From Cyanophora paradoxa CCMP329 (taxonomy: Eukaryota; Plantae; Glaucophyta), in NCBI GenBank assembly GCA_004431415.1, contig QPMI01000122.1:1-64000 (forward strand): 64,000 bases of DNA, written 5' to 3'. The notes beneath the pieces are model-generated. The model saw nothing but the letters and a program-made list of their open reading frames with translations, was not told the DNA's origin and made no database searches. This document shows, one piece after another, positions 9,725 to 44,956 of the stretch; position 1 is the stretch's first letter; every line of letters begins with the position of its first letter. The position numbers and the translations under genes are program-made.

Positions 9725-10072
9725 TCAGAAGGAGGCGAAGGCGACGGCGACGAAGCGGAGGCCGGCGGCGGCGTCGTCGGCGAGGGCCTCGGGGCGCGCG
9801 AGCACCGCCCCGGGCTCCCCCACCACCGTCACCCGCTTCCCCAGCGACCGCACCCCGCTGTTCCCCTCCCCCGCGTGCCTGCCCCGCCCCGCCTCAGCCG
9901 GGGCGCGCGGGGCCGGATGGCGGGTGGGGCGGGGGTCGGGGGGCACCGGCCGGGCCCGAAGCGGACGGTGTCGACGGGGAGGGCGGCGTCGATGGCGCGC
10001 GCGAGGGTCCGGAAGGGCGCCCCCGCGCTCCCGTCCCGGCCCCGTCCGACCCCGCCACCGACACGTGCAGGT
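9725..10072 (-). other. DUF1565 / beta-helix-cap-like C-terminal module of the giant protein
   Basis: DLHVSVAGSDGAGDGSAGAPFRTLARAIDAALPVDTVRFGPGR (after restoring one G in a G-run near 10035) matches the 'YVS..G.D...G....PF.TI..A......DT....PG' motif. Confidence 0.55.
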
Positions 10073-13000
10073 CTGCCCGCGCCCCCGCCCCCGTCACGCG
10101 CGGCGCGGGGCGGGGCGGGGCGGGGCGGGGGCGGGGACCGGAGAAGAGGACGCGGAGGTCGTCGGGGGAGTAGAGCTCGCCGTCGAGGGTCACCGAGAGC
10201 CGCGCCGCCCCGCCGCCCCCGCCGGGGGGGCGGGGCAGAGCACGCGCGTGGGCCCCGCGTACGTCGCGGCGACGGAGGGCGAGTCGGGGCGGTCGCCGAA
10301 GCGGCAGCGCAGCGCCGCCGTGTTCGCGAAGTTCGCCCCCGTGACCGTCAGCGTCGCGCCCCCGGCGAGCGGCACCCGCGCGGCGACGGGTGGGGCGAGG
10401 CGGGGCGGCTCGCCGGCCTCCCCCGCCGAGACCCCGCTCACGCTCGGCACGAGCCCTGCGCGCCGCGTCGGGTCTAGGCCGGGGCGGGGGCGGGGCGGGG
10501 GGGCGGGGCGGGCGGACGGCGGAAGGCGAAGGGGAGGGCGGCGGGGGAGTCGAAGGCGGGGTCGAGGGGCCCCTGGTTCACCCGCACCGCCGCGAGGGCC
10601 TCGTGCGCCACCGCCGGCGCCGCGCACGCCACCGCCCGCGCCGAGAGCCACGTCGCGTTGACGTACTCGGAGCCGAGGAGGCCGCCCAGCACGGGGGCCC
10701 CCTCGAAGCGGCACTTCAGGTGCGGCGAGGGCCGGAAGCCCGCCCCGTACACCGTCACCAGCGCCCCGCCGCTGAGCGGCGCGGCGGCCGGCTCGAGGGC
10801 GGCGAGGGCGGGTGGGGCGCGCTCGTAGCGGAAGGCGAGGGGCGCGCTCCACGCCGCCCCGTCGTTGGAGACGAGCAGCTCGACGGCGCCCTCGCGCCGG
10901 CACGCGTTGCGCCGCGGCGGGGCCACGCAGGCGACGCGGGCGGCGGAGAGGAAGGCGGCGGGGACGGAGACGGCCTCGTGGTCGTCGCGGAAGGCGCAGC
11001 GGAGGCGCGGGCCCGCCACGAAGCCCGCGCCCCTCACCGTCACCGCCGTGCCCCCCTCCGGCGGGCCCGCCCCCGCCCCCTCCGGCTCCACCCCGAAGAG
11101 CACCGGCGCCCCCGCTGCCCGCGCGTCAGCAAGTGGGGCGGGGCGGGGGCGGGGCGGGGCGGGGCGGACGGGGCTCGGGGGCGTCCTGGGGCGGGGCGGG
11201 CCCCGGGGTGGCCGGGGCCGGAGGGCCTCGTCGCGCGCCCCCGCGAAGTAGCGGAAGAGCAGCGGCGTCGCCGCCTCCTCGCCCCGGCGGCGTGCGCCGA
11301 GACGGGCCCCGCCGCCGCCCCGGGGCCGACCCGGGGCCACCAGCAGCGCCGTGTCGTTGGCGGCGAGGAGCGCCGCGGCGGGGACGCCGGCGAGGGTGAC
11401 CCCCGCCGCCCCGCCCAGCCCGAACCCCGCCACCGTCACGTTCACCCCCGCCCCGGCCCCGGCCCCGCCGCCGCCGCCGACGCCGGGCACACCGACACGA
11501 TGCCCCGCGCTGCGGGGCGTCAGGCGGCGCGCGGCCTGCGCGGGGGAGCGGGGCGGGGACCGTAGGTGTAGGCGGCGGGGAGGGCGGCGGAGCCGTAGAG
11601 GGCGGAGCGGACGGCGACGGCGAGGGGCGCCGGGGCGGTCGCGAGGTCGGCCTCCGAGGCCGGCGGAACCGCGACGAGGAGGGCGGAGGCGGGGCCGGCG
11701 GCGAGGCAGGTGGCCGGGGCGGGGAGGCCCGCCCCGAAGGCGACCCGCGCGTCCGCCTCGGACCCCGCGGGGCCGCACAGGTGCTCACCGCTCACCGTCA
11801 CCGCGTTCCCGCCGGCAGCGGGGCCCGACGCCGGCGACACCCCCGTCACACGCGACGCTGCGCAGGCGCCGTCGCCCCCGGCGTCGGCCCCGGCGAGTGC
11901 GGGGGGAAAACGGGGCGGGGGCGCGCGCGCACTGCCGGTGGGGTTGAAGCGGAAGGCGCCGTGGGCGGTGGTGCGCCCGAGGAGCGCGTCGGTGACGGCG
12001 ACGTCGAGGGGCGGGCCCGCCGCGAGCCCCGCCGCCGGCAGCGCCGCCACGACGCGCGTCGCGTTCGCGGAGAGGACGGTCGCCGCGAGGCCGCCGACGG
12101 CGACGGTCACGTTGGCCGCCGTCGAGTCGGGGGCGGCGAGGCGGGCCCCCGTGACGGTGATCGTCGCCCCCGCGGGGCCGTTGTTCGGCTCCACCGCGAA
12201 GACCTCCCCCGCTGCCGCCCCCCCGGCGTCAGCGGCGGTGCGGGGCGGGGCGGGGCGGGCGGGGCGGGGCGGGCGGGCGGGGCGGGGCACGTGTGAGGCG
12301 GTAGCGGAAGGCGGCGGGGCGGGCGGCGGAGCCGTGGGAGCGGGAGCGGACGGCGACGTCGACGAGCTCGCCGTCGGCCCCGCCCTCCGGCACCACCACC
12401 ACCAGCGACGAGGCCGTCGCCCCCCCGGCGATCGGGCCCGCCACCCGCGTCTCCCGGCCCCCGAAGAGCACCCGCGTGTTCTCCCACCGCCCCTCCGTCA
12501 TGTCCGTCAGGTCTGACCCCGCCCCGCCCCCGTCGGCGAGGCCGGCGGCGCGGGCGGGCGGGCGGGGGGGCACCGGTGCCGATGATCGTGACAACGCTGC
12601 CGGGGGGCCCGCTGCTCGGCTCGACGGCCGTAATCGCCGACGCTGCGCCCGAGGCGCGTGAGGCGGGGCACCGGCGGCGACGTGGGGCGGCGGCGGGGCG
12701 CGCACGGGCGGTGCCGGGGTGGAAGAAGTAGGCGGCGGGGCGGGCGGCGGCGCCGAAGCGGGCGGAGAGGACGACGGCCTCGCGCCCGTCGAGGGCGGCC
12801 GCCCCCGCGCAGGCGACGAAGACGACGGCCGTCCGCGAGGCCGCGAGGGGCGCCACGGGGCCGCACCCGCCCACCGACACCGTCACGTTGTCCGGCGAGC
12901 CGGCCAGGTTCGTCCCCTCCACCGTCACCACGTTCCCTGCCCCGCCCCGCCCCGTGAGCGCCCGCCGGGGCCCCGGGCAAGCGGCGCACCGCCGGCGAGG

Positions 13001-16000
13001 GGCCCGTTGTCGGGCACGAGGCGCGTGATGGTGCCGGCTGCGCGGCGTCAGGCGCGGGGCCGGCGGACCGGCGCGGGGCGGGGCGCGGCGAGGGCGCACG
13101 GGAGTTCCAGGTGTAGGGGGGCACGTGAGGGCCCGAGGAGGGTGGAGCGGAGCTCGAAGGGGTGCGGGGCGTCGGGGGCGAGGGGCCCCGCGGCGGGGGC
13201 GAGGAGCTCGGCGTGGCCGGCGGCGGTGACGTTGACGGGGCCGGCGTCGCGGCCCCCGACGAAGGCCCGCACCACGTCCCCCGCCTCCAGGTCCCCCACC
13301 ACCGCCCGCACCGCCCCGCCCCCCGCCGCCGGCCCGTCCGCATACGGCTCCAGCCCCTTGCAGCTCGTCGCTGCGGCGGCTCAGCGGCGCGCGGCGGGGA
13401 GGGGAGGGGCGGGGCGGACGGGGGTTCCAGCGGAAGGCGGCGGGGGCGCGGAGGGCGAAGCAGGGGGAGGCGACGGTGAGCTCAACGGGGACGCCGGCCG
13501 CGTTGCCCCCCGCCGCCGGCGCCACGAACGAGAGCTCCGCCCCGCTCCGGTGCTGCACGCTCGCTGCCGCCCCCGCCCCCGTCGGCGAGGGCCGGCGCGG
13601 GGCGGGGTGGGGCGGTCGGGCGCACTGGCGGAGGCGTTGCCGAGGGTGACGACGGGGGCGACGCCGGCGACGTAGGAGACGAGCAGGTTCGCCCCCAGCA
13701 GCGTCACCCGCTGCCCCGCCACCGAGCCCCCTGCCCCCGAGGCCCAGCTCGAGCTCGGCGGGGCGGGACGGGGCGGGGCGGGGCGGGGCGGGGCGGACCG
13801 AAGGGGGCGGAGGGGAAGGGGGCGAGGGCGGCGAAGGCGGCGGGGAGGACGGTGACGAGGGCGGGGGACTCCTGCACGTGCACCTCGCCCCGCGCGTAGC
13901 GCACGCTGAGCTCGACGGGCCCCGCGGAGGCGTCCGCCGCCACGTGCCAGCGCAGGCGGAAGGGCCCCGCGCCCGAGGCCTGGGCGAGGGGCGTGGAGGC
14001 GTTGAGGGTACCGGCGGCGGGGGGCGAGAGGGTCGCCTCCTGCAGGTCCCCCGCCTGGATGCTGTCCAGCTCCACGCTCACCGCGCAGTCGACGTAGCCC
14101 CCCGTCCCCACCGCCCCGCCGGCGCAGCTGCGCTCGCACGCGAGGCGCACGCCGAAGACCTCGTGCTGCACCGCGTCCGTCACGTCGCCCCCGCCGACGC
14201 CGGGGGCCCACGCGACGGCCGTCGTGACGTAGCGCTGCCGCCGGTTCTCCGCCTCCGTCGTCAGGTTGTACGCGAAGGCGGGGCCCCCGCCCCCGAGCGC
14301 CGTGACGAGCCCGCCGGCCGTCACGCGCGGCGCCAGGTAGTCGGCGTACACGGGCGCGCCGCACGTCGGGCTCAGCGTGCAGACGGAGATCGAGCCGCGC
14401 CCCACGCGCGGCGCCGAGCAGTTCAGCGTCGCGTCTGCGGCGTCGGGCGGCGTCGGGCGGGCGGTGCGGGGCGGGGCGGGGCGGGGCGGGGCGGGCGGCG
14501 CACCGACGATGGCGATGCTCTGGGTGACGTTGACGGCGCCGCCGCCGACGGCGGCCACGAAGGAGAGCGTCAGGTCGGCCGCCTGCAGCGCGCACTGCCA
14601 CCGCGCCGCCGTGAGCGCCAGCACGAACGGCCCGTTGGCCGGCCCCGCGAGGGCGCTGGTGATGGCGGCCGGGACGGGGCTCGCGAGCGCGCCCCCGTCG
14701 AAGTCGGAGAGGAAGGCGTCCCCGAAGGTGAGCACCGCGCGGCAGACCTTCGCCCCGCCCCGCCGCAGCCGCAGCGGCCCCTCGCACGCGAACCCCGCGT
14801 CTGCGCCGCGTCGCCCTCAGCGCCCCGGCGGCCGGCGACGGGCCCGCGCCGCGCGCACCGAAGAGGCTGATGTTGTAGGGCGAGGCGAGGGGCCCGGCGG
14901 TGACGCCGGCGTCCCAGCTCATGGAGACGGTGACGGCGGGGACGCTGCTCTGCGCGGCGTCCGCGAGGAGGACGAGGGCGAGGGGCCCCCCGACGGGCCC
15001 GTGCAGCGCCGTCGCAATCGTCACGGCCGACGTCGCGTTCCCCTCCGCGTCGGTGATGGCGCCCCCGTCGAAGTCGGAGGCGACCGGCCGCCCGTGCGTC
15101 GCCGTCACCGTGCACGTCTTCACGCCGCCCCTCCGCAGCCGCGGGAAGTCGCACGTGAAGTTCGCGTCTGCCGCCCCCCGGTGAGAAGGGCGGGCAGGAA
15201 ACCGATGCGCCCGCAAAGGCACCGAAAACTTGAATGTCCTGCGCGTCGAACGGCGCCTTGGTCCCGACGTCGTCCGCCCAGTACATCGTGACCGTGACGT
15301 TTTCGTGCGCTGTTTGCGCGGCGTCCGCTGAGATCGTGAGGGCGAAAGAACCGCCGTCTCCCCCGCCCAGCGGCGTGCTGATCGTGACGGCCGCGTTGCT
15401 CAGCGACGTCGTTGTGTCGAAGTCGGCTGGAATCGGCAGCCCGTGCGTCGGAGTCACAGTGCAAACTTTCGAGCCGCCGCGCCGCAGCCGCAGCGGCGAC
15501 GCGCACGCAAAGCTCGCGTCTGCCGCACGCGTCAGCGAGCGACAACGCGCCATCTCCGACGACGGGGCGCGCACCGAAGATCGCGAGGGTGCGCGGGGAG
15601 GGCGCCGGGTCCTCAAAGTCGTACACGTCCGTCGTGAAGCTGACGGTGACGGTCGCGTCGTTGGACGTCGTCTGCGTATGATCCGCGAGCAGGGTGAGGT
15701 ACAGGGAGGTCGACCCCGGCAGCCGCGTCAGGCTCGTCGCCACGTTCAGGCCGGCCGTCGTGACCGTCGAGAAATCCTGCGGCAGCGGCTGCCCCACGAG
15801 CGCCGTCACGGTGCAGTTCTTCGTCCCGCCGTGCCGCAGCCGCAGCGGCGTGTCGCACGCGAAGGTCGCGTCTGCGAGCGCGAGCGCGAGCAGTGAGAAG
15901 CGCATCAGCCGAATGAACCTTTGCGCCACGGCTATCGCTGCAGCCGCACCGAACATGCTTATGTTGTACGGCGACTGCACCGTCCCCGCCGTCACGCCGG

Positions 16001-19000
16001 CCACCCACGACATCGTCACCGTCACGTCCGACACCGTCACTTGCGACGCGTCCGCCGTCAGCACAAGCGTGTGAGGCCCGCCGACGCTCCCATCCAAGGC
16101 CGTCGTGATCGCTGCCGCCGTTGTCACCGCCCCCGCCGCGTCGGTAATCACGCCACCATCGAAGTCCTCCTTGATGGGCCGCCCGTGCGTTGCGGTGACT
16201 GTGCACGTCCTGTTGCCGCCTCTCCGCAGGCGAGGCCCCGCACACGAGAAGGTCGCGTCTGCGAGCGGGATCGAAAACGCGTTGACAAGCGCGACGGATT
16301 GCCTATCGTACCGAAGACTTCGATGTTCTGCGGGTCAATTGCTGCAGTTGTCCCGACGTCGTCCGCCCAGTACATCGTGACCGTGACGTTCTCGTGCGCT
16401 GTTTGCGCGGCGTCCGCTGAGATCGTGAGGGCGAAAGGCCCGCCGTCCGAGCCCGTGAGGTTGCTGCTGATGCTGACGGCCGCGTTGCTCAGCGACGTCG
16501 TCGTGTCGAAGTCGGCCCGGACCGGCGTGCCGTGCGTCGCCGTCACCGTACAGACCTTTGAGCCGCCGCGCCGCAGCCGTAGTGGTGACGCGCACGCGAA
16601 GCTCGCATCTTCACAGCCAAGGATATCTCAGCAGAAGGACCACGAGGCGATCGGCAGGGACGCACCGAACAGCTGCAAAGTGGATGGGAAAGGAACAGTC
16701 GTTGCGACCCCGTGGACATATGCAGCGAACGTGATCGTGACAGTCGTCGACGTGTAGGTGGTTTGCGAGGCGTCAGCAGTGACGACAAGCGTGATGGCGC
16801 CCGTGCTCGCGTCGGGAAGAGACAGCGGCGAGAGGGAGACGCCTCCGGTCGCGGCAGTTACGAAGTCCGCGGGGATGGGATGGCCGAACACAGGCGAGAT
16901 CGTACAGGACTTGGTCCCGCTCCGCCGCAAACGCAGCGGCGCGTCGCACGCAAAACTGGCGTCTGGGGAGCGAGTCAGCCGAGCGGAGCTCGCATGGATC
17001 GGCAAGCGCACCGAAGAGTGTGATGGTCTGTGAAGATGCCAACACTTCCTCGGTGTCGAACACAGCAGTCGTGAAGCGGACCTCGACGATTGACGTTTCC
17101 GTCTCGTTCTGCGTTGCATTGGCCGTCATCGTGAGGTACAGCGACCCGTCGGACAGCGAAGACAACGAGGACAGTGTCACTCCAGCGGTAGCGCTCGTGA
17201 TGAAATCGCCAGGGATGGGGTATCCCACAACCGGCGTGACAGTGCAGTTCTTCGATCCACTCCGACGAAGCCGCAGCGGCGTGTCGCACGCAAAGGTCGC
17301 GTCTGCAGGGGCGAGCAGTGGGAAGCGCATCAGCCGAATAAACCTTTGCGCCACGGCTATCGCTGCAGCCGCACCGAACATGCTTATGTTGTACGGCGAC
17401 TGCACCGTCCCCGCCGTCACGCCGGCCACCCACGACATCGTCACCGTCACGTCCGACACCGTCACTTGCGACGCGTCCGCCGTCAGCACAAGCGTGTGAG
17501 GCCCGCCGACGCTCCCATCCAAGGCCGTCGTGATCGCTGCCGCCGTTGTCACCGCCCCCGCCGCGTCGGTGATCACGCCACCATCGAAGTCCTCCTTGAT
17601 GGGCCGCCCGTGCGTTGCGGTGACTGTGCACGTCCTGTTGCCGCCTCTCCGCAGGCGAGGCCCCGCACACGAGAAGGTCGCGTCTGCGCACGGGACAGTC
17701 GGCTGAGAGCACGGGACGGGCGACTTTGAAATCTCAATCGCAAGGCGAACCGAACACTTCTATGTCCTGCGCGTCGAACGGCGCCTTGGTCCCGACGTCG
17801 TCCGCCCAGTACATCGTGACCGTGACGTTTTCGTGCGCTGTTTGCGCGGCGTCCGCTGAGATCGTGAGGGCGAAAGAACCGCCGTCTCCCCCGCCCAGCG
17901 GCGTGCTGATCGTGACGGCCGCGTTGCTCAGCGACGTCGTTGTGTCGAAGTCGGCTGGAATCGGCAGCCCGTGCGTCGGAGTCACAGTGCAAACTTTCGA
18001 GCCGCCGCGCCGCAGCCGCAGCGGCGACGCGCACGCAAAGCTCGCGTCTGCCGCACGCGTCAGCGAGCGAAAAATCCATCTCCGACGACGGGGCGCGCAC
18101 CGAAGATCGCGAGGGTGCGCGGGGAGGGCGCCGGGTCCTCAAAGTCGTACACGTCCGTCGTGAAGCTGACGGTGACGGTCGCGTCGTTGGACGTCGTCTG
18201 CGTGTGATCCGCGAGCAGGGTTAGGTACAGGGAGGTCGACCCCGGCAGCCGCGTCAGGCTCGTCGCCACGTTCAGGCCGGCCGTCGTGACCGTCGAGAAA
18301 TCCTGCGGCAGCGGCTGCCCCACGAGCGCCGTCACGGTGCAGTTCTTCGTCCCGCCGTGCCGCAGCCGCAGCGGCGTGTCGCACGCGAAGGTCGCGTCTG
18401 CGAGCGCGAGCAGTGAGTGCGTACGCAAAGATCCAAGAGAACACTAGCAGCCCGAAAGGGATGAAGAGAAGAGAACGGAGCAGAAGAGAACGGCGGACCG
18501 AAGATCTCGAACGAGAATGTGGAGCTGCCGCCGCCGACGCCGGGGACCCAGAGGACGGCGACGGTGACGTTGGGGAAGCTCGTCTGCGCGCTCTCCGCCG
18601 TGTAGGCGAAGAAGAAGGTGCCGTCCGCGAGGTCCGTCACGTTCACGGTGAGGTCCCCCGAGCCGGCGCCCGTCCACGTGCTCGCGCCACCCCGCCCGCT
18701 CGGGTTGCTCACCTCCACGTCGAAGAACTCGTCGCGGGTGAAGCTCCCGAAGAGGGGCGCGATGGTGCAGTTCTTCGAGCCGCCCCGCCGCAGCCGCAGC
18801 GTCCCCGTGCAGTTCAGCCCCGCGTCGAAGATCGCCACCGTCTGCGTGGCCGGCAGCGGCGCCCGCCCGCCGACCTCCTCCGCCCAGTAGAGCGTCACCT
18901 CCACCGAGTCGTGGCTCGTCTGCGCCGCGTCCGCGAGCAGCTCGACGGCGAGGGAGGAGCCGAGCGGGCCCGTCGGCCCGACGAGCAAGACGGCGGCGTT

Positions 19001-22000
19001 CGAGACGGAGCCGGCAACGCTGAAGTCGGAGGCGTTGATGCTCCCGAAGGTCGCCGCAACGGTGCACGCCTTCCGCTTCGCCCGCGCCAGCCGCAGCGGC
19101 GTCGCGCACGAGAAGTTTGCGTCTGCCGCACCCGGTGAGACAGCGGAGGCGGCGGGGCGGGGCACGGGGCACCGAAGATCTGGTAGCTGTAGGCGAGGAG
19201 CTGCGCGGAGTTGCCGACGGTCTGGGCCCAGTACACGTCGACGGCGGCCGCGGTGTGGGCCTCCTGGAGCGCGTCGGCGGTGACGTTGAGCGTGAGCGCG
19301 CCGCTGCCGTCCCCCGCCGGCACGAGCGAGACTTGGAGCGCGCTGCTCGAGACGACGACGACGAAGTCCTCGGGGAGGAGCGCCGCCAGCGGGGCGCGCG
19401 CCCCGCAGGTCGTCACGCCCCCGCGCCGGATGCGCGAGGCCTGTGCCGACGTGCAGTTGACGCTCGTGGCTGCAGCGCGGCGAGGCGTGAGTACCGACGC
19501 GGCGTGAGTGCCGACGCGGGGGCTGGCGGGCGGGGCGGGCGGGGCGCACCGACGAGGGCGATCTGCTGCACGCCCGAGACGACCGCCGCGTCGCCGACGG
19601 AGGCGTCGAACTCGAGCGTCACGTTGGCCCCCGTGGGGCCGACCTCCGTCCCGTTCGCGACCATCTCGACGACGAGGTCGGGGCCGAGGGAGTAGACCGC
19701 CCGCGACACGGCGAGGCCGTCGGTGTACGAGAAGACGAAGTCGGTCGTCGCGAGGGTCCCCAGCGTCGCCGTCGCCGTGCAGTTCTTCGTGCTGTTGAGG
19801 CGCAGCCGCAGCGGCCCGTCGCACGCAAAGGTCGCGTCTGTGCGCGCGCGGGTGAGCGCCCCTCGCCGCGGGGGCGGCGCGGCGCGCGGGCACCGAAGAG
19901 GGTGAAGGGCTGGAAGGCGATGAGGGCCCCGCCGACGCCGGGGACGTAGGAGAGGGTGAGGTTCACGTCGGTGGCCAGCGTCTGGCCCGGCTCCGCCGTG
20001 AAGACGAGGGTGAAGGGCCCGCCCGAGGGGCCCGTCACGTTCTGCGTCACGTCGCCCGTCCCGAGCCCCGCCCAGAGCGCCCGGTCGTGGCCGCTCGGGC
20101 GAGTGACGGCGACCTCGAAGTCGGAGGCGTTCGGGTGGCCGAGCGTGGCCTCGATCGTGCACGTCTTCGACTGGCCCCGCCGCAGGCGCGCCTGGCCGGC
20201 GCACGTGAAGTTCGTCTCTGCACCGCCCGCGCCGTCAGCGAGGCGGCGGCGCGGGGGGCAAGGGCGAGCGGCGGCGCGCACCGAATATCTGGAAGGAGAC
20301 CTGCGAGATGCGGTCCGCGACGGTCGGGACGGAGGAGGGCGAGCTGAGGTTCACGCTGCCGACTTGCAGCGGGTTCCACGAGAGGGTGACCGTCGTCGAG
20401 GAGAAGGTGCTCCCGAGATACGCCACGACGGCGAAGCTGATCTCGGTCGAGTTTTCCGTCGACGTCACCGTCGGGACCGCCGCCACAAGCGAGGAGCCGG
20501 CCGGCGAGGACCCGAGCACGAAGTCTCCTCCCGCAATCGACCCGATCACGCTGCCCGGCGCGAGCGACAGGCGGCAGGCGCCGGTGCCGCCGCCGTGGAG
20601 ACGCGCAAGGCCGCAATCCAGCTCGCGGACACCCGGCAGAATATCTGAAGGGGCGAGTCGGGACGGACCGGCGCGAGGCAACGATTCGGGAGGGCGCACC
20701 GACGATCTGGACGGTGGTGGGGTCGTCGACGGGGTCGAAGGTGCCGCCGACGCGCGTGCCGTTCCACTTGATGGCGATGGAGGAGGAGCTGACGTTGGCG
20801 GCCATGGAGGCCTCGAGGAGGATGGCGAGCGCGCCGCGCTTGTAGTGCTCGTTGACCTCCACCAGCCGCGTCGGCGACCACCCGATGGAGACGATGGAGA
20901 AGCCGCCCCCGTCCGAGTCGATGACGAGGTCCTCGAGCTCGACGCCCCCCACGATCTTGTACGCGAAGTTCGGGTCCGTGATCGACGACTCGAAGACGCA
21001 CGTGATCTGCGCCCCGCGCCTCACCCGCAGCGGCGAGCACCGCGAGCGCCACTCGCCCTCGAAGCCTGGCCCGAGCCCACCGCGTCAGCGGTGCGGGGGA
21101 TGCACGCGTGAATCGACGTCCCCGCACCGATGATGGCGAACGTCTGCGAGGCGAGAAGGGGCGCCGTTGCAGTCTTGACAGTCGTCGTGTTCCAAGAAAT
21201 CGATATGGTACCCGAGGGGTCGTCGAAGATCTGTAGAAACAGAGGGGACGGGCCCGTGACCGAGAACGAGAGACTGCCGCCGTCCGCGGCGAAGGCGGGG
21301 GACCCGCCCGCCGTGAACGCGATGGTGCTCGCGGGTGCGGCGATGACCAAATCGTCGAAGGTGACGGCCCCCACGAGCGACGCGAAGGCGAGGGTGCAGT
21401 TGGCCGGCACGGTGCTCGGGTACCGCAGGCGGCTCGAGGTGCACGAGAACACCGGCGTGAACCCTTCGCGCGGGAGTGAGCGGGGACGAAGCACAGGGCC
21501 ACCCAGGCAGGTGTTCTCACCAACGATCGACAGGTTGAACGCGCCGCTGTTTCCGAAGACCTCGCTCGCCGAGCCCACGCCCTGGGCGGCGGTCGCGACA
21601 CGGCCGGGGCGGGAGGGGAGGCGGCGCGGCGCACGGCGTTGTTCCAGAAGACTTGCACGGAGGCCGACGCGCTCGTCGCCGAGGCGGCGGCGGTGACGTC
21701 GAAGGCGAGGTGGACGAAGCCCGTCGTGGCGTTCCACCCGGCGCCGGAGACGACGAGCGACGCGTCGGACGTCGCGACGAGGACGTCGGCAAGGCCGATC
21801 GTGCCGTACACCCGCCCCGTCGGCGAGCTCAGCCGGCAGCTCGTCGTCGCCCCCACCTGCAGCCGGCCGGCCGCGCAGCTCAGCGTCCAGTCCCCGTCCA
21901 CGTCTGCCGCGAGTGAGCCCCGCATGCGCGCTGCTCGAGAGCGCCGGGGGCCTCACCGAGCGTCGTGAAGGGCTGCGAGGCAACGACCTCCGCGCCGGGG

Positions 22001-34000: not shown

Positions 34001-37000
34001 CCGAGTCCCTCGACGTCGCGCTCCCACCGTCTGGTTCGCCACGCACGAGTACACCCGCCCCGCCTCCAGCGCGATCTGCGCGCAGGCCGTCGATGCATCG
34101 TTCAGCAACCGAACCAGGAGATCATGGAAAACGACACGCACCGACACATCCGCCTGTCCGCCGCTCGGTGCGATGGCCGCGCTCGTCTCCACCGCCGACA
34201 ATGTGTCCGTTCTCGTGCAGCGCACCGAGGCCGCGCCCGCCCCGTCGTCCACCGCCAGCGTCAGCGTCACGTTGCCGTCCGCTCGCTTCACGCCCGTCGC
34301 CCCCGCCAGCGGCGACGTGATGTTCGGCGCTGAGAGCGCCGTCGTGAACGTGACCGACCCCGAGTCGATCGAGGTCACGCCCCCGACCGTCTGGTTCGCC
34401 ACGCAGGAGTACGTCCTGCCTGCCTCCAGCGCGATCTGCGCCCCGCCGCCCGTTTCCCGCTCAGTAACGTGCAGCCCTCTTCACCCCAGGGCGGGCGCCT
34501 GCGCACCGATACCATGGCCCGATTGCTGGCTGGAGTGATTGCTGCGCTGGTCGTCTCCGGCAAGAGCGTGTCGGACCGAGTGCACCGCACGGAAGCCTCC
34601 GTCGCTCCGTTCTCCACCTCCAGCGTCAGCGTCACGTTGCCGTCCACCCGCTCCACACCCGTCGCCCCCGCCAGGGGATCCACGATGGCCGGAGCTCCGA
34701 CTTCTGTCGTGAAGGCAACCAGCTCCGAGTCGCTCGACGTCACAGTCCCACGCTCTGATTCGCAACGCACGAGTACGCCCGCCCAGCTTCCAGCGCGATC
34801 TGCACACCGAGAGAACCCGACCCGCTAAGCCTTCCTCTCGGCAGCCCCGCATTCCGATACAACCCACGCACCGACACGTTCGCCAAGCCGCCGCTAGGGG
34901 CGATTGCCGCAGCCGTCGTAGCCGATTCCAGCGTGTCCGTTCTTGTGCAGAGGACGGACGCAGCACTCGCTTCAGCATCCACCGCCAGCGTCAGCGTCAC
35001 GTTCCCGCCAGCCCGCGGCACTCCCGTCGCCCCCGCCAGCGGCGAGGTAATGTTCGGCGGCAGCAGCTCCGTTGCGAACTCCACCGCCGCCGAGTCCCTC
35101 GACGTCACGCTCCCCACCGTCTGGTTCGCCACGCACGAGTACACCCGCCCCGCCTCCAGCGCGATCTGCGCGCAGGCCGTCGATGCATCGTTCAGCAACC
35201 GAACCAGGAGATCATGGAAAACGCCACGCACCGACACATCCGCCTGGTCGCCGCTCGGTGCGATGGCCACGCTGCTCGTCTCCACCGCCGACAATGTGTC
35301 CGTTCTCGTGCAGCGCACCGAGGCCGCGCCCGCCCCGTCGTCCACCGCCAGCGTCAGCGTCACGTTGCCGTCCGCTCGCTTCACGCCCGTCGCCCCCGCC
35401 AGCGGTGACGTGATGTTCGGCGCTGAGAGCGCCGTCGTGAACGTGACCGACCCCGAGTCGATCGAGGTCACGCCCCCGACCGTCTGGTTCGCCACGCACG
35501 AGTACGTTCTGCCTGCCTCCAGCGCGATCTGCGCCCCGCCGCCCGTTTCCCGCTCAGTAATGTGCAGCCCTCTTCACCCCAGGGCGGGCGCCTGCGCACC
35601 GATACCATGGCCCGATTGCTGGCTGGAGTGATTGCTGCGCTAGTCGTCACCGGCAAGAGCGTGTCGGACCGAGTGCACCGCACGGAAGCCTCCGTCGCTC
35701 CGTTCTCCACCTCCAGCGTCAGCGTCACGTTGCCGCCCACCCGCTCCACACCCGTCGCCCCCGCCAGGGGATCCACGATGGCCGGAGCTCCGACTTCCGT
35801 CGTGAAGGCAACCAGCTCCGAGTCGCTCGACGTCACAGTCCCCACGCTCTGATTCGCAACGCACGAGTACGCCCGCCCAGCTTCCAGCGCGATCTGCACA
35901 CCGAGAGAACCCGACCCGCTAAGCCTTCCTCTCGGCAGCCCCCGCATTCCGATACAACCCACGCACCGACACGTTCGCCAAGCCGCCGCTAGGGGCGATT
36001 GCCGCAGCCGTCGTAGCCGATTCCAGCGTGTCCGTTCTTGTGCAGAGGACGGACGCAGCACTCGCTTCAGCATCCACCGCCAGCGTCAGCGTCACGTTCC
36101 CGCCAGCCCGCGGCACTCCCGTCGCCCCCGCCAGCGGCGAGGTAATGTTCGGCGGCAGCAGCTCCGTTGCGAACTCCACCGCCGCCGAGTCCCTCGACGT
36201 CACGCTCCCCACCGTCTGGTTCGCCACGCACGAGTACACCCGCCCCGCCTCTAGCGCGATCTGCGCGCAGGCCGTCGATGCATCGTTCAGCAACCGAACC
36301 AGGAGATCATGGAAAACGACACGCACCGACACATCCGCCTGGTCGCCGCTCGGTGCGATGGCCGCGCTCGTCTCCACCGCCGACAATGTGTCCGTTCTCG
36401 TGCAGCGCACCGAGGCCGCGCCCGCCCCGTCGTCCACCGCCAGCGTCAGCGTCACGTTGCCGTCCGCTCGCTTCACGCCCGTCGCCCCCGCCAGCGGCGA
36501 CGTGATGTTCGGCGCTGAGAGCGCCGTCGTGAACGTGACCGACCCCGAGTCGATCGAGGTCACGCCCCCGACCGTCTGGTTCGCCACGCACGAGTACGTT
36601 CTGCCTGCCTCCAGCGCGATCTGCGCCCCGCCACCCGTTTCCCGCTCAGTAACGTGCAGCCCTCTTCACCCCAGGGCGGGCGCCTGCGCACCGATACCAT
36701 GGCCCGATTGCTGGCTGGAGTGATTGCTGCGCTAGTCGTCTCCGGCAAGAGCGTGTCGGACCGAGTGCACCGCACGGAAGCCTCCGTCGCTCCGTTCTCC
36801 ACCTCCAGCGTCAGCGTCACGTTGCCGTCCACCCGCTCCACACCCGTCGCCCCCGCCAGGGGATCCACGATGGCCGGAGCTCCGACTTCCGTCGTGAAGG
36901 CAACCAGCTCCGAGTCGCTCGACGTCACAGTCCCCACGCTCTGATTCGCAACGCACGAGTACGCCCGCCCAGCTTCCAGCGCGATCTGCACACCGAGAGA

Positions 37001-40000
37001 ACCCGACCCGCTAAGCCTTCCTCTCGGCAGCCCCGCATTCCGATACAACCCACGCACCGACACGTTCGCCAAGCCGCCGCTAGGGGCGATTGCCGCAGCC
37101 GTCGTAGCCGATTCCAGCGTGTCCGTTCTTGTGCAGAGGACGGACGCAGCACTCGCTTCAGCATCCACCGCCAGCGTCAGCGTCACGTTCCCGCCAGCCC
37201 GCGGCACTCCCGTCGCCCCCGCCAGCGGCGAGGTAATGTTCGGCGGCAGCAGCTCCGTTGCGAACTCCACCGCCGCCGAGTCCCTCGACGTCGCGCTCCC
37301 CACCGTCTGGTTCGCCACGCACGAGTACACCCGCCCCGCCTCCAGCGCGATCTGCGCGCAGGCCGTCGATGCATCGTTCAGCAACCGAACCAGGAGATCA
37401 TGGAAAACGACACGCACCGACACATCCGCCTGTCCGCTGCTCGGTGCGATGGCCGCGCTCGTCTCCACCGCCGACAATGTGTCCGTTCTCGTGCAGCGCA
37501 CCGAGGCCGCGCCCGCCCCGTCGTCCACCGCCAGCGTCAGCGTCACGTTGCCGTCCGCTCGCTTCACGCCCGTCGCCCCCGCCAGCGGCGACGTGATGTT
37601 CGGCGCTGAGAGCGCCGTCGTGAACGTGACCGACCCCGAGTCGATCGAGGTCACGCCCCCGACCGTCTGGTTCGCCACGCACGAGTACGTTCTGCCTGCC
37701 TCCAGCGCGATCTGCGCCCCGCCGCCCGTTTCCCGCTCAGTAACGTGCAGCCCTCTTCACCCAGGGCGGGCGCCTGCGCACCGATACCATGGCCCGATTG
37801 CTGGCTGGAGTGATTGCTGCGCTGGTCGTCTCCGGCAAGAGCGTGTCGGACCGAGTGCACCGCACGGAAGCCTCCGTCGCTCCGTTCTCCACCTCCAGCG
37901 TCAGCGTCACGTTGCCGTCCACCCGCTCCACACCCGTCGCCCCCGCCAGGGGATCCACGATGGCCGGAGCTCCGACTTCTGTCGTGAAGGCAACCAGCTC
38001 CGAGTCGCTCGACGTCACAGTCCCCACGCTCTGATTCGCAACGCACGAGTACGCCCGCCCAGCTTCCAGCGCGATCTGCACACCGAGAGAACCCGACCCG
38101 CTAAGCCTTCCTCTCGGCAGCCCCCGCATTCCGATGCAACCCACGCACCGACACGTTCGCCAAGCCGCCGCTAGGGGCGATTGCCGCAGCCGTCGTATCC
38201 GATTCCAGCGTGTCCGTTCTTGTGCAGAGGACGGACGCAGCACTCGCTTCAGCATCCACCGCCAGCGTCAGCGTCACGTTCCCGCCAGCCCGCGGCACTC
38301 CCGTCGCCCCCGCCAGCGGCGAGGTAATGTTCGGCGGCAGCAGCTCCGTTGCGAACTCCACCGCTGCCGAGTCCCTCGACGTCACGCTCCCCACCGTCTG
38401 GTTCGCCACGCACGAGTACACCCGCCCCGCCTCTAGCGCGATCTGCGCGCAGGCCGTCGATGCATCGTTCAGCAACCGAACCAGGAGATCATGGAAAACG
38501 ACACGCACCGACACATCCGCCTGTCCGCCGCTCGGTGCGATGGCCGCGCTCGTCTCCACCGCCGACAATGTGTCCGTTCTCGTGCAGCGCACCGAGGCCG
38601 CGCCCGCCCCGTCGTCCACCGCCAGCGTCAGCGTCACGTTGCCGTCCGCTCGCTTCACGCCCGTCGCCCCGCCAGCGGCGACGTGATGTTCGGCGCTGAG
38701 AGCGCCGTCGTGAACGTGACCGACCCCGAGTCGATCGAGGTCACGCCCCCGACCGTCTGGTTCGCCACGCAGGAGTACGTCCTGCCTGCCTCCAGCGCGA
38801 TCTGCGCCCCGCCGCCCGTTTCCCGCTCAGTAACGTGCAGCCCTCTTCACCCCAGGGCGGGCGCCTGCGCACCGATACCATGGCCCGATTGCTGGCTGGA
38901 GTGATCGCTGCGCTAGTCGTCACCGGCAAGAGCGTGTCGGACCGAGTGCACCGCACGGAAGCCTCCGTCGCTCCGTTCTCCACCTCCAGCGTCAGCGTCA
39001 CGTTGCCGCCCACCCGCTCCACACCCGTCGCCCCCGCCAGGGGATCCACGATGGCCGGAGCTCCAACTTCCGTCGTGAAGGCAACCAGCTCCGAGTCGCT
39101 CGACGTCACAGTCCCCACGCTCTGATTCGCAACGCACGAGTACGCCCGCCCAGCTTCCAGCGCGATCTGCACACCGAGAGAACCCGACCCGCTAAGCCTT
39201 CCTCTCGGCAGCCCCCGCATTCCGATACAACCCACGCACCGACACGTTCGCCAAGCCGCCGCTAGGGGCGATTGCCGCAGCCGTCGTAGCCGATTCCAGC
39301 GTGTCCGTTCTTGTGCAGAGGACGGACGCAGCACTCGCTTCAGCGTCCACCGCCAGTGTCAGCGTCACGTTCCCGCCAGCCCGCGGCACTCCCGTCGCCC
39401 CCGCCAGCGGCGAGGTAATGTTCGGCGGCAGCAGCTCCGTTGCGAACTCCACCGCCGCCGAGTCCCTCGACGTCACGCTCCCCACCGTCTGGTTCGCCAC
39501 GCACGAGTACACCCGCCCCGCCTCCAGCGCGATCTGCGCGCAGGCCGTCGATGCATCGTTCAGCAACCGAACCAGGAGATCATGGAAAACGACACGCACC
39601 GACACATCCGCCTGTCCGCCGCTCGGTGCGATGGCCGCGCTCGTCTCCACCGCCGACAATGTGTCCGTTCTCGTGCAGCGCACCGAGGCCGCGCCCGCCC
39701 CGTCGTCCACCGCCAGCGTCAGCGTCACGTTGCCGTCCGCTCGCTTCACGCCCGTCGCCCCCGCCAGCGGCGACGTGATGTTCGGCGCTGAGAGCGCCGT
39801 CGTGAACGTGACCGACCCCGAGTCGATCGAGGTCACGCCCCCGACCGTCTGGTTCGCCACGCAGGAGTACGTCCTGCCTGCCTCCAGCGCGATCTGCGCC
39901 CCGCCGCCCGTTTCCCGCTCAGTAACGTGCAGCCCTCTTCACCCCAGGGCGGGCGCCTGCGCACCGATACCATGGCCCGATTGCTGGCTGGAGTGATCGC

Positions 40001-43000
40001 TGCGCTAGTCGTCACCGGCAAGAGCGTGTCGGACCGAGTGCACCGCACGGAAGCCTCCGTCGCTCCGTTCTCCACCTCCAGCGTCAGCGTCACGTTGCCG
40101 TCCACCCGCTCCACACCCGTCGCCCCCGCCAGGGGATCCACGATGGCCGGAGCTCCGACTTCCGTCGTGAAGGCAACCAGCTCCGAGTCGCTCGACGTCA
40201 CAGTCCCCACGCTCTGATTCGCAACGCACGAGTACGCCCGCCCAGCTTCCAGCGCGATCTGCACACCGAGAGAACCCGACCCGCTAAGCCTTCCTCTCGG
40301 CAGCCCCCGCATTCCGATACAACCCACGCACCGACACGTTCGCCAAGCCGCCGCTAGGGGCGATTGCCGCAGCCGTCGTAGCCGATTCCAGCGTGTCCGT
40401 TCTTGTGCAGAGGACGGACGCAGCACTCGCTTCAGCATCCACCGCCAGCGTCAGCGTCACGTTCCCGCCAGCCCGCGGCACTCCCGTCGCCCCGCCAGCG
40501 GCGAGGTAATGTTCGGCGGCAGCAGCTCCGTTGCGAACTCCACCGCCGCCGAGTCCCTCGACGTCACGCTCCCCACCGTCTGGTTCGCCACGCACGAGTA
40601 CACCCGCCCCGCCTCCAGCGCGATCTGCGCGCAGGCCGTCGATGCATCGTTCAGCAACCGAACCAGGAGATCATGGAAAACGACACGCACCGACACATCC
40701 GCCTGTCCGCCGCTCGGTGCGATGGCCGCGCTCGTCTCCACCGCCGACAATGTGTCCGTTCTCGTGCAGCGCACCGAGGCCGCGCCCGCCCCGTCGTCCA
40801 CCGCCAGCGTCAGCGTCACGTTGCCGTCCGCTCGCTTCACGCCCGTCGCCCCGCCAGCGGCGACGTGATGTTCGGCGCTGAGAGCGCCGTCGTGAACGTG
40901 ACCGACCCCGAGTCGATCGAGGTCACGCCCCCGACCGTCTGGTTCGCCACGCAGGAGTACGTCCTGCCTGCCTCCAGCGCGATCTGCGCCCCGCCGCCCG
41001 TTTCCCGCTCAGTAACGTGCAGCCCTCTTCACCCCAGGGCGGGCGCCTGCGCACCGATACCATGGCCCGATTGCTGGCTGGAGTGATCGCTGCGCTAGTC
41101 GTCACCGGCAAGAGCGTGTCGGACCGAGTGCACCGCACGGAAGCCTCCGTCGCTCCGTTCTCCACCTCCAGCGTCAGCGTCACGTTGCCGCCCACCCGCT
41201 CCACACCCGTCGCCCCCGCCAGGGGATCCACGATGGCCGGAGCTCCAACTTCCGTCGTGAAGGCAACCAGCTCCGAGTCGCTCGACGTCACAGTCCCCAC
41301 GCTCTGATTCGCAACGCACGAGTACGCCCGCCCAGCTTCCAGCGCGATCTGCACACCGAGAGAACCCGACCCGCTAAGCCTTCCTCTCGGCAGCCCCCCC
41401 ATTCCGATACAACCCACGCACCGACACGTTCGCCAAGCCGCCGCTAGGGGCGATTGCCGCAGCCGTCGTAGCCGATTCCAGCGTGTCCGTTCTTGTGCAG
41501 AGGACGGACGCAGCACTCGCTTCAGCGTCCACCGCCAGCGTCAGCGTCACGTTCCCGCCAGCCCGCGGCACTCCCGTCGCCCCCGCCAGCGGCGAGGTAA
41601 TGTTCGGCGGCAGCAGCTCCGTTGCGAACTCCACCGCCGCCGAGTCCCTCGACGTCACGCTCCCCACCGTCTGGTTCGCCACGCACGAGTACACCCGCCC
41701 CGCCTCCAGCGCGATCTGCGCGCAGGCCGTCGATGCATCGTTCAGCAACCGAACCAGGAGATCATGGAAAACGACACGCACCGACACATCCGCCTGGCCG
41801 CCGCTCGGTGCGATGGCCGCGCTCGTCTCCACCGCCGACAATGTGTCCGTTCTCGTGCAGCGCACCGAGGCCGCGCCCGCCCCGTCGTCCACCGCCAGCG
41901 TCAGCGTCACGTTGCCGTCCGCTCGCTTCACGCCCGTCGCCCCCGCCAGCGGCGACGTGATGTTCGGCGCTGAGAGCGCCGTCGTGAACGTGACCGACCC
42001 CGAGTCGATCGAGGTAACGCCCCCGACCGTCTGGTTCGCCACGCACGAGTACGTTCTGCCTGCCTCCAGCGCGATCTTGGCGAGGATTAGCTAGAGTTTG
42101 CACCAAAAAAGTTACACGTACAGATATAGATGCTGTGTCGAATACTGGGAAAATTGAAGAGCTTGCGGTGAATGTCGATCCAGAGTCTGATCGAAGACAT
42201 CTTACCGCGATCCAAGTTGCCCAGAAGTCTACAGACACCTTAATTGTGACGTGTCCGTTCATATTTCGAGAAACAGAAGTGGAGCTTTGAACTGGTGACG
42301 AAATAGATGGCGGAGACACCGAGAGGGGATCTAATGCCGAAATGGACACGTTGTTGAGCACGGTCATGGAGCAGTTCTGCGGCACAGTGAAGTTGACAGT
42401 CACGTTGTAGAAGACGATGCGGGTCGCGGGGGTTGTAGGCCAGGTCGTGCTGTTCTCCAGGGAGGCGACGAGGGAGGTCAGGTCCGACGCCGTGCTGGGC
42501 GTGAACGTGGTGTTGCCCAGGTCTCCAGCAAGGAGGCCCCCAGCGTCCGATGTTATCGTGCAGTTGATTGGGCTCTCTCCAAACACGACGAAAGAAGACG
42601 AGCAGCCGAAGGTAGCACCTGGACCAGAGTTGGAAAGGCTCTAACGAACAAGTAGAGAATACTTACCGTACAAGGCGATTGACCCTGAGCCCACTGCATC
42701 CGAGCTTCCCACTGCAGGGTTCCATGCCACCGCGACTGACGCGCTCGTCGAGGTGGAAGTCAACGATGCAAAAGCTGTGAGTTGCAGCACGGAATTGCTC
42801 AAAGTAGTGGGGTTGACTGTCAAGTCCGAAGATGACGTGACCACGAAATCATCCAGGAGCAGAGGGGCCGCTACGGCTGTCCCACCACTGAAAGAACAAG
42901 ACGACTGAGAGCCACGTGATAGCCTGGAGGGGTTGCAGCTGAGCGTCCAGTTCGCAGAGAGGTCGACGAGAGTGACCGTGAAAGATGCAATGCTGGTGGA

Positions 43001-44956
43001 GCCCCAGGTCGAGCTGAAGGCTATTGAGATCGTTGCAGTTGTTGCCGCTGAGCTGGAGTTTCCAGTGGCGGTCAATGAGAATGAGCTGGTCGCCTGGTCC
43101 CAGAATGTGTTCGACAACGTGAGCCCTGTCGAACTCACTGCTATGGTAAAGTCGCTAAGGAAAAGAGTACCGATTGACCCCCCTCCAGTTGCAGAGCAAG
43201 ACATGCTCGTGGTGCGTCTCATTCTAGATCGATCGCAGGACAAGCTGTACGGCGATGTGCTAGTGTCCAGGTCTGCAGGCAGGTCAGAGACAAAATGACG
43301 AGGGCGTACAGAAAGGAGCACCAAATATGTCGACAAAGTAGGCACTTGAGCTGATATTCGGGAATGAGCTTGTTGAGCATACAATACTTGTGTCCAACTG
43401 GACATAAACCGAGCCAGAGTTCTGTAGCATTGCGCTGTCCGCTGTGAGTGTGAAGGTCAAGTTCGATGTTGTTATCCAACTTGGGTTGGTGACTGTTAAG
43501 CCAGAGCTGGCTTTAAACAGAAGATCAGATGTCAGGAAGTTGGATGAGACGATCCCGCCGGTCAGTGTGCAAATGGTAGAGAAACCCCTTCTTAAACGAC
43601 TTGCCAAGCAAGACAGGCTCCAGGTCCCAACGCTTGTTATGCCTGTGAAACGATTTAGAAAGACATGACGAAGCCAGCACACTAGTTGAATTGCTGCTCA
43701 CTGATGGCTGTCAAGCTCGAAGATGATGCGAGAGTGCGTGATGCTCCTGCCCTCAATGTAAGAGAAGCTGTGTTCCACACTGCAGTCACAGTTGCACTCC
43801 CAGTGCTGGAGCTTGATGTCGTCAGCGTCCACGTCCAGTCAGAGGAAACTCTGCGTGGTTTTGGCAGGTTCTGTCAGGTTCAACGATAACTGTTTTTTTT
43901 AAAAAAGAGCCATAGCCATACCGTGATGCCGCACCAACTGCGAAGACCGGTGTGCTGCTCGAGTTCGATAGGACCTCAGATCCATCGAAGTAGGCACTCC
44001 CCGAAATAACTGCTCCAGAGAAGGTGCAGGTGGCAGTTGACCCCAGCAAGAACCTTGTGTACCCACAGGACACACTGCCTCCACTAATATCTGTGGAGGA
44101 GATTCAAGAATCGCAAAGGCGCGCGGGAGACGAAAAGCACCAATAGAGGACACAGTTGTTTTGTTGCCAAGAAAGGTCAACTGCCAAGGTGAATTACAAT
44201 CTGAAGCGGTATTCGGGTATGTGCAGGATTGAGTAAAGTGCCGCAGGTACGACATAAACGTCAGTTTCCGTGCTTGGGTGCTTGTATAGGTAAAGGTCTT
44301 GCCAGCACAAGGGGCAGCACTGGTTCCACAAGCTGTGCCAGTCAGGATGACTTGGTCGCATGAGCAGGTTCCTGTTGTAGGCGCCGTGAAGCCCGTGGTG
44401 GCATCACAGGCAGAAGGCGCGATGCAGTCTTGGTAGTACTGGCCACTGCAAGTGGTTGCTGCCCCACTGATCGTGTAGCCTGTACAGGTCGTTCCAAACG
44501 TAAAGCCCGGAACTGTTGCACTGGATGAACCAAGCGAAAGCTCCGTAGATGTTACAGGTGGATCTGAGGTGGGACGGACTTGTGCGCCTGCCAATGGGAT
44601 GTCAAGAAGGTATGACTTGTATAGCGTCCTTGAGCCCGAGCCCGTGGCTTCTGTTCCCAGAAAACAAGTGGAGGCAGAATATGAGCATGTGACCACGGTC
44701 CCGACTTGAACTTTGGTGGGCGAACAGCTCAGGAATGCGGGAAGAGTGTGCGCGGCTGCACCAGGTTTGCCACAGACCGGATAAGTCACTGCGCCACCTG
44801 ATGCCTGCTGCCACATCGTGCACATGATGATGCATGCAAGGTTGAGAACCCAGGGCGGAATCAGAATCTGCTGCAGAAGGATTACTGACATCAGCCAGCG
44901 TCAATCTTCCAGCTAACCTTTGCAAGTCTTTTCCTCGTTCTCCACCTGGTCTCCAT
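9725..44956 (-). CDS. Giant (~9,500-10,000 aa, estimated) secreted multi-module repeat glycoprotein, ~100 exons
   Basis: ATG 44956 METRWRTRKRLAK|QILIPPWVLNLACIIMCTMWQQASG gives a signal-peptide pattern (intron 44917-44871). A chain of frame-compatible exons continues through the RLRRG modules, FN3/Ig-like arrays and IPT/TIG domains to ...FVAVAFASF* (TGA 9727-9725). I saw no intergenic-type break. Thr/Ser/Ala/Val-rich with abundant N-x-S/T sequons. Confidence 0.75.
10190..13760 (-). repeat. About 9 tandem IPT/TIG domains of the giant protein
   Basis: Repeated 'V..P..GP..GG..VTV.G.NF/GF' starts, e.g. AITAVEPSSGPPGSVVTIIG, VFAVEPNNGPAGATITVTG, VTGVSPASGPAAGGNAVTVSG, LEPAAAPLSGGALVTVYGAGF. Units end in F.Y/F.F. 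Confidence 0.8.
13799..23035 (-). repeat. About 25 ~100-aa 'C..RLRRGG.K.C' modules, mostly one per phase-1 exon
   Basis: Recurrent DA(T/S)F.C..PLRLRRGG.K.CTV...G.P...DF...AD..QT...IF. Most units are bounded by ...TTC G|GTGCG and CAG|AC. Confidence 0.8.
15223..15875 (-). repeat. Two-exon block duplicated at 17751-18400; adjacent exon 15895-16262 duplicated at 17320-17687
   Basis: Near-identical nucleotide sequence, including parts of the introns (e.g. DATFACDTPLRLRHGGTKNC and TPTHGLPIPADFDTTTS exons occur twice). Confidence 0.85.
25330..31087 (-). repeat. Higher-order tandem array A: ~1,092-bp trimer (3 exons + 3 introns), ~5.3 copies
   Basis: Exon types ending ...SNHATVS, ...GLAAVS and ...GSTMVS recur with ~1,092-bp period (matching ORF starts 26368, 28551, 29643, 30735). 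Copies are near-identical, introns included. Confidence 0.92.
33050..42075 (-). repeat. Higher-order tandem array B: a different ~1,092-bp trimer, ~8.3 copies
   Basis: Exon types ending ...GQADVS, ...GLANVS and ...NRAMVS. Same-type exon starts near 42075, 40985, 39894, 38802, 37711, 36620, 35528, 34435 and 33347. Confidence 0.92.
42450..44740 (-). repeat. About 6 divergent N-terminal 'C..RL.RG..C' modules plus a Cys-rich segment
   Basis: WSLSCLASRLRRGFSTIC, YSLSCDRSRMRRTTSMSC, WTLSCNPSRLSRGSQSSC, VSCGYTRFLLGSTATC, FLSCSPTKVQVGTVVTC. Confidence 0.65.

Follow-up and report, generated by a model that had tools for sequence, protein, structure and literature searches.

A 35-kb gene of the glaucophyte Cyanophora paradoxa with a predicted secreted product of about 92 tandem beta-sandwich domains and two candidate site-1 protease sites

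Giant glycosylated filaments made of chained immunoglobulin (Ig)-type domains are already known in kind from protists. Chlamydomonas builds algal extracellular filament proteins that include the anchorless MST1, with tandem Ig-like domains, and the 8,572-aa MST3 (PMC11015965), and a tandem-IPT glycofibril from pond water, TLP-IPT (CryoSeek), has over 200 consecutive IPT domains, O-glycans and a rise of 3.27 nm per domain (bioRxiv 10.1101/2025.09.30.679562). Cyanophora paradoxa is wall-less, with mucocysts (PMC6212826, PMC6704402) and two types of flagellar hair, one of them long and narrow (PMC6704402), and the proteins of glaucophyte mucocysts, surface coats and flagellar hairs are identified in no paper that we found. 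Here, we describe a giant gene in a 64,000-nucleotide stretch of C. paradoxa CCMP329 (contig QPMI01000122.1, positions 1 to 64,000, assembly GCA_004431415.1; hereafter the window), which a preliminary description, made from the letters alone, had read as encoding a secreted modular protein of titin scale.

The gene occupies 9725..44956 of the minus strand (ATG at 44956, stop at 9727-9725), the span originally proposed, and in our model, which combines a splice-aware search with manual curation, has 97 exons and 96 introns encoding 9,668 residues (about 964 kDa). The resulting coding sequence of about 29 kb and mass of about 0.96 MDa agree with the earlier estimates of ~29 kb and ~1 MDa. The start codon is uncertain, since two more ATGs, at 45037 and 44891, lie in the same frame. 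The introns, all 96 of them GT-AG, are short (46-101 nt, mean 65; the published PacBio-based assembly of about 100 Mb and 67.6% GC has a mean intron of 86 bp (PMC6704402)), beginning with GTGCG in about 60 of the 96 and ending with GCAG in about 75; phase-0 introns flank the exons of the fibronectin type III (FN3) domains, and phase-1 introns flank nearly all exons of the IPT domains and of a module that we call 'RLRRG'. From its N-terminus, the predicted protein runs through a signal peptide, a Cys-rich head, 5 'RLRRG' modules, 52 FN3 domains, a unique segment, 25 'RLRRG' modules, about 10 IPT domains and a DUF1565-like end; overall it is acidic (pI 4.6), with 23.5% Ser+Thr, 5% Pro and 226 N-glycosylation sequons. 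Database searches and folds were done per exon, and the joined protein was used for counting alone. Module order and counts agree with the earlier reading and, with the predicted folds, support the first suggestion that this alga encodes a secreted chain with about 90 domains of the beta-sandwich type; the linker motifs and frameshift errors reported below are new to the reading of this locus.

Compared with described systems, the giant protein shares with TLP-IPT a single chain of Ig-fold beads, richness in Ser/Thr and a suspected freshwater protist origin, but it is mostly FN3 and invasin-type, rich in N-sequons, and with about 10 IPT domains instead of over 200 consecutive ones is ruled out as the source of that fibril. 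It has ten times MST1's number of Ig domains, but lacks the poly-hydroxyproline helix, PKD channel domain and large Cys-rich C-terminal region of MST1/MST3. Like fibronectin and tenascin, it would be a secreted tandem-FN3 rod, except that its FN3 module has two conserved Cys; and like fibrocystin, it has an IPT run leading into what appears to be the start of a beta-helix, which here stops after about one turn. Stalks of the invasin/intimin/FdeC type (Big_1) and filamin have the same fold as the 'RLRRG' module (Z 10.2-8.9, rmsd 2.1-2.4 Å over 81-88 residues), but are only 8-16% identical to it, and the 'RLRRG' module adds a Cys pair and an Arg-rich strand; nor does the giant protein have the beta-barrel or lectin tip of invasin, intimin and FdeC. 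In the literature searched (on this architecture in Cyanophora, and on RRLL and REJ proteins in algae), we did not find the anchorless layout of three families, the two module families outside Pfam or the paired linker motifs.

The 52 FN3-fold domains (23372..42316; 52 FN3/Ig-like modules had been estimated) each contain two Cys, are each split by a phase-0 intron, and together hold 148 N-sequons (2.8 each, where the preliminary description gave about three). An AlphaFold2 model of a genomic read-through, in which an in-frame intron of 22 residues was left in place, had a pLDDT of 77-93 outside this intron and its flanks, with the intron insert disordered, and best matched NCAM FN1 (Z 10.7, rmsd 2.4 Å, 91 aligned); FN3 domains made up nearly all of the top 50 matches. 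By this model, the array module is an FN3 fold, a seven-strand sandwich. The Pfam fn3 profile matched no array module at E up to 10, and no homologues were found in protein, metagenome or prokaryote-genome searches, the protein searches being limited to proteins of similar length.

Within the FN3 block are two higher-order arrays, (ABC)x8+A at 33054..42075 (array I) and (HIJ)x5+H at 25332..31087 (array II), in which copies three exons apart are 99% (exons and introns) and 98% identical, respectively, versus 75% and about 60% for adjacent copies. Exons and introns are alike in their identity at this lag, and the pattern points to recent exchange of three-exon units, with growth by unequal crossing-over or conversion. 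Recent tandem amplification is accompanied by purifying selection (dN/dS 0.23-0.42 between repeated FN3 types). About a third of the array introns (23530-42075) are stop-free multiples of three, so that retention would add 22-24 residues to an FN3 domain, and skipping of any exon in this range keeps the frame and yields a hybrid domain.

The 'RLRRG' modules occur in two runs, of 5 modules (42332..44090) and of 25 (13851..23043, mostly one module per exon between phase-1 introns). The later count is that of the preliminary description, while of the roughly six N-terminal modules that it listed five are clear and the sixth is doubtful. Two Cys are invariant in all 30, and an Arg and an Asp nearly so; the AlphaFold2 model is all-beta (pLDDT 93), with the FdeC stalk as best structural match (Z 10.2, rmsd 2.3 Å, 86 residues), followed by InvD (Z 9.5), invasin (9.3) and filamin A (9.2). 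The invasin-type and filamin groups lie within about 1 Z of one another, and the module is, as modelled, an Ig fold of the invasin/intimin or filamin type; Foldseek returned weak Ig matches alone. Structure comparison per module had been called for, and it gave Ig-type sandwiches for both unnamed modules. Against Pfam, the 'RLRRG' module scored 18.1 bits with Filamin (E 0.005, cut-off 26.9) and had no Big_1 match, and it had no sequence match in the Protein Data Bank. Membership of DUF7507/DUF11 was rejected (hhalign, 25 columns aligned, probability 7.6%), as was furin cleavage at 'RLRR': no more than 16 modules conform to R-x-R/K-R, and the motif sits between the two invariant Cys. What is conserved is a single Arg together with a remote Asp, suggesting that the two pair structurally. 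Some late modules are recent duplicates: almost identical copies lie at 18397-17751 and 15871-15223, and again at 17683-17375 and 16258-15950.

In a module tree, N-terminal 'RLRRG' modules 2-4 cluster with post-array modules 2-7 (support 92/91, few columns), and the FN3 block therefore probably entered, or expanded within, one older 'RLRRG' run. Two Ig-module families absent from Pfam are defined by this locus.

The two ends of the protein bear on whether it is anchored. The signal-peptide-like N-terminus (44798..44956) consists of a basic stretch and a hydrophobic core with a likely cut near residue 37-39, and hydropathy confirmed a hydrophobic stretch where a signal peptide had been noted previously. 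It is followed by the Cys-rich head (44141..44797, about 220 aa, 16 Cys), for which we found no Pfam, homologue or Atlas match (protein searches limited as above) and which may begin with one interrupted 'RLRRG'-type module. Beyond the FN3 block, about 92 aa of unique sequence, rich in aromatic residues and Asn (23098..23371), precede the second 'RLRRG' run; this segment had no match in the Atlas. The IPT/TIG domains (10139..13850) number about 10 (about nine had been estimated); three exon pieces and one two-domain exon exceed the Pfam cut-off (PF01833: 54.7 for the two domains, 31.9, 27.1 and 25.4 bits versus 20.9), and two split exons score weakly. The DUF1565-like cap and apparent first beta-helix turn (9725..10072) complete the protein as described before, at a sub-cut-off score (a 28-aa piece matching positions 9-36 of 257, E 0.0097), with the stop about 50 residues on. 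No transmembrane helix was found after the signal peptide (no 19-residue window above 1.8; the best, 1.84, lies inside the signal peptide), in keeping with the original claim, and no REJ domain: every exon is assigned to other modules, leaving no stretch of 400 residues.

An alternative would make this protein a surface-tethered adhesin, in which the C-terminus is a glycosylphosphatidylinositol (GPI) signal, the Cys-rich head is a ligand-binding tip and cuts at the RRLL-type sites described below shed the outer third. The last 11-15 residues are indeed hydrophobic (mean hydropathy 1.9-1.7), the stalks of invasin, intimin and FdeC share the fold of the 'RLRRG' module, and a head at the tip is typical of adhesins. 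However, the tail is short, contains an Arg and fits the first turn of a truncated beta-helix behind the DUF1565-like cap, and we regard a tethered adhesin as distinctly improbable.

Contrary to the preliminary description, the locus as assembled is not one frame-compatible exon chain: translation ends at residue 1,180, and the frame stays open only if single bases are added in G/C runs. We aligned four public runs (two DNA, two RNA-like) on 9350-15300; runs containing this DNA date from 2012, 2019 and 2024, and the DNA runs may share the assembly's strain. Eight missing exonic bases (10034, 10207, 11213, 11281, 11317, 11332, 13115 and 13131) were present in contigs of both DNA runs and of one or both RNA-like runs and were restored, giving proper IPT and DUF1565-like sequence in the 3' frames; because these bases are present in both kinds of contig, the eight gaps are assembly errors. 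A GC-AG intron in our first model (11238-11186) was ruled out, as the RNA-like contigs keep the stretch with one extra base. In the FN3 array, nine positions are short of one G/C-run base (40852, 40493, 38670, 34749, 34025, 33925, 33812, 33661 and 27316), 4 of the 9 at the same five-G site, and a further candidate loss of the same kind lies at about 11458; all ten were entered as X in the protein model. Because they are of the same class as the proven errors and rarer per kb (nine single-base events in 18.6 kb of array versus nine in 6 kb at the 3' end), these ten are probably assembly errors too. The locus illustrates how long-read homopolymer errors can conceal giant repeat genes.

Expression of the locus, for which the preliminary description had called, is indicated by spliced RNA-like contigs at the 3' end and by 5' sequence words in the same runs. 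The RNA-like runs X15 and X16, two samples of one study, contain 0.75 and 0.66 of the sequence words of 42122-44956, where the ceiling for spliced RNA is 0.82. At the 3' end, splicing is directly observed, with contigs skipping six modelled introns (14858-14801, 14503-14435, 11932-11858, 10517-10456, 10138-10073 and 9946-9879). Splicing and the stop of the DUF1565-like end are both seen in these contigs, which run on unspliced to 9510 and 9459, defining a 3' untranslated region (UTR) of at least 266 nt (9459..9724). The modelled C-terminus is therefore real and no anchor exon lies downstream; an extension of the protein past the stop, by more beta-helix or by a membrane anchor, was ruled out, the RNA there being unspliced 3' UTR and the next gene lying on the opposite strand.

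That the gene is read as a single full-length mRNA, as we infer, has a rival in which no full-length product exists: some array frameshifts would be real, or more than one transcript present, giving a shorter N-terminal protein (first stop codon at residue 1,180) and perhaps another product from the 3' part. Its proponents could point to the nine array indels, known from the assembly alone, to the lack of any single read across the gene and to the strong GC contrast between 5' exons (54%) and 3' exons (80%). Yet all nine indels are one-base G/C-run losses, a class that at the 3' end proved to come from the assembly, both gene ends occur in the same RNA samples, and there is selection on modules either side of the array. 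Splitting by internal promoters, the refutation envisaged by the preliminary description, is left no room: inter-exon gaps never exceed 101 nt and the splice consensus is common throughout, so an internal promoter has no space, and we saw no internal signal peptide or gap of intergenic size. A broken or split locus is accordingly quite improbable in our judgement.

Given one continuous chain, a feature in the middle of the FN3 block, roughly one-third along the protein's length, suggests how it might be processed. In two consecutive FN3 exons that have diverged (32629-32267 and 32217-31891), 10-11 extra residues sit exactly at the domain linker, and these, the sole two linker insertions, contain the protein's only RR(x)LL motifs: RRALL (residues 3421-3425; 32513..32527, minus strand) between FN3 domains 27 and 28 and RRRLL (residues 3543-3547; 32098..32112, minus strand) between domains 28 and 29, where about 0.0005 would be expected in 25 residues. 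Site-1 protease (S1P) cleaves R-X-aliphatic-Z, with RRLL optimal (PMC8310232), and plant pro-pectin methylesterases (pro-PMEs) carry RRLL or RKLL processing motifs (bioRxiv 10.1101/2022.07.28.501549); the RALL and RRLL of the two insertions match the S1P consensus. The FN3 domain between both sites, with 17 K+R versus 9 D+E, is the sole clearly basic part of the acidic protein. Several paralogues have one or two RRxL-like motifs each, and a literature search for RRLL in algae returned nothing. Site-1-type cleavage is a probable fate of both candidate linkers. The region of these candidate sites is also one of the low-GC patches of the gene, which coincide with its non-repeated parts (42122-44956, 31518-32981 and 23098-23820; exons 54-59% GC), with GC3 of 58-61% in the first two; elsewhere in the gene GC is 66-80% and GC3 up to 99%.

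With confidence only slightly better than even, we favour a structural extracellular glycofilament, released or held by partners, that derives from the secreted precursor of one gene. The precursor, of about 9,670 residues, would enter the endoplasmic reticulum (ER) via its signal peptide, where each domain would become a disulfide-pinned, heavily glycosylated beta-sandwich, and in the early Golgi a site-1-type protease would probably cut behind both R-R-(x)-L-L motifs. The double cut would discard one divergent basic FN3 domain and leave two rods of about 3,400 and 6,100 residues (about 340 and 610 kDa before glycans), the first with 27 FN3 domains and the second with 24, and these anchorless rods would be stored then released, or kept by partners on the cell surface. 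If each domain adds 3.3-4 nm, with the rise of TLP-IPT as the lower estimate, the 92 domains of the uncut filament would extend about 0.30-0.37 micrometre, as mucocyst content, slime or a surface coat of a wall-less alga. The FN3 block would act as a length spacer that lengthens or shortens in three-domain steps by unequal crossing-over.

The data directly support the gene structure, the splicing of its 3' end, the folds as predictions, purifying selection and recent tandem amplification, while a single full-length mRNA, secretion, glycosylation, disulfides, cleavage and location are what we infer. Several points weigh against the proposed filament. No binding or polymerisation domain was identified in the exon-wise domain searches, so the role is deduced from architecture, and the Cys-rich head and 92-aa segment have no assigned fold. 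The S1P enzyme gene was not located in C. paradoxa. Both the nine frameshifts and the copy number of the FN3 array come from the assembly, the longest contig on the gene covers at most 1.7 kb, and no read or contig spans the whole. The RNA status of X15 and X16 is an automatic label, which splicing in their contigs supports, and the protein itself is known from DNA and RNA-like sequence alone.

Relatives of the modules place this protein in a wider family. The 'RLRRG' profile matched 31 proteins out of 1.84 billion, the giant gene's own product not among them; 10 of the 11 best matches, checked in EukProt, were all from C. paradoxa, as were four further among the weaker ones. The module is thus present in no fewer than 14 further annotated proteins of C. 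paradoxa, in paralogues of 1,000-7,700 residues with up to 34 copies, and with these and the protist Ig-chain fibrils already known in kind (TLP-IPT), calling the locus an undescribed system overstated its novelty. The FN3 module was absent from all 'RLRRG' paralogues examined. Five paralogues bear a REJ domain (EukProt tig00020553_g10756, tig00021489_g21700, tig00020603_g11772, tig00020824_g14231 and tig00000405_g442) and 10-34 of these Arg-rich Ig modules, each with the two Cys; most end in one C-terminal hydrophobic membrane helix, whereas the giant protein has neither REJ domain nor helix and ends in IPT domains. The literature search on REJ proteins in algae returned nothing. Part of the giant 'RLRRG' family is annotated as adjacent fragments (g10755/g10756, g16806/g16807 and g14228/g14230/g14231), which are probably single genes cut by annotation. 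Outside Cyanophora, matches were weak (Ancoracysta, E 1e-8, and bacterial DUF7507 proteins), and scanning metagenomes with a single 'RLRRG' module gave no match. A 590-nt contig of a European Nucleotide Archive (ENA) metagenome (L001) has three consecutive modules of the giant gene in the same order with the same intron positions, its middle exon 77% identical (dN/dS about 0.5), and an orthologue is therefore present in a wild relative; the orthologous intron at L001:450-505 has a GC donor versus GT in the window.

These paralogues also furnish a second account of function, in which the protein serves one of the two flagellar-hair types as structural subunit or as length ruler, tethered via a membrane partner such as a single-pass REJ paralogue with 'RLRRG' modules. 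C. paradoxa has a long, narrow hair type besides a second one (PMC6704402), Chlamydomonas MST1, anchorless and Ig-rich, polymerises on the 8,572-residue polycystin-like ruler MST3 (PMC11015965), and the REJ-bearing paralogues mostly have a C-terminal hydrophobic helix. The giant protein, however, has no poly-proline tract (Pro 5%) and no MST1-like C-terminal region of 26 disulfides, and a common module is no proof of binding; we therefore consider a hair component unlikely. We also regard as rather improbable a more elaborate version, in which a glaucophyte extracellular organelle (mucocyst fibre or long flagellar hair) is made from a private Ig-module kit: S1P would cut the precursor twice and remove the basic domain as a 'pro-spacer', and the 27- and 24-domain FN3 rods, almost the same in length, would pair side by side and dock on REJ paralogues via the Arg-rich module.

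For the favoured glycofilament, pond-water cryo-electron microscopy now yields glycosylated Ig-chain fibrils that lack a known gene, and this locus is a concrete candidate. Its repeats would yield identical peptides, in up to dozens of copies, that mass spectrometry should pick up easily, with two products implied by the predicted cuts. In addition, the 'RLRRG' module connects an anchorless filament with polycystin-like REJ proteins in an early-branching plant relative.

Head to head with the giant gene, and starting 645 bp from its ATG, lies a gene for protein O-mannosyltransferase (PMT; PF02366 + PF16192, 45602-47946, plus strand), whose first intron has an apparent GC start at about 45844; it could share a promoter with the giant gene and O-mannosylate the Ser/Thr-rich modules, or be a chance neighbour. 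Convergent with the PMT gene is a glycyl-tRNA synthetase-like gene with an N-terminal WHEP-TRS domain (about 48100-51017, minus strand), and a chromodomain gene (PF00385, E 1e-14) lies at about 58100-58700 on the plus strand. On the other side, the giant gene and a plus-strand gene (about 5700-8445) converge on the AT-richer 8500-9460, which lies between their 3' ends and contains short repeats, for example a 14-nt unit at 9022-9053. The window overall is GC-rich with numerous short introns, and at 62000-64000 GC drops to 54% with long open frames, possibly marking a mobile or foreign element.

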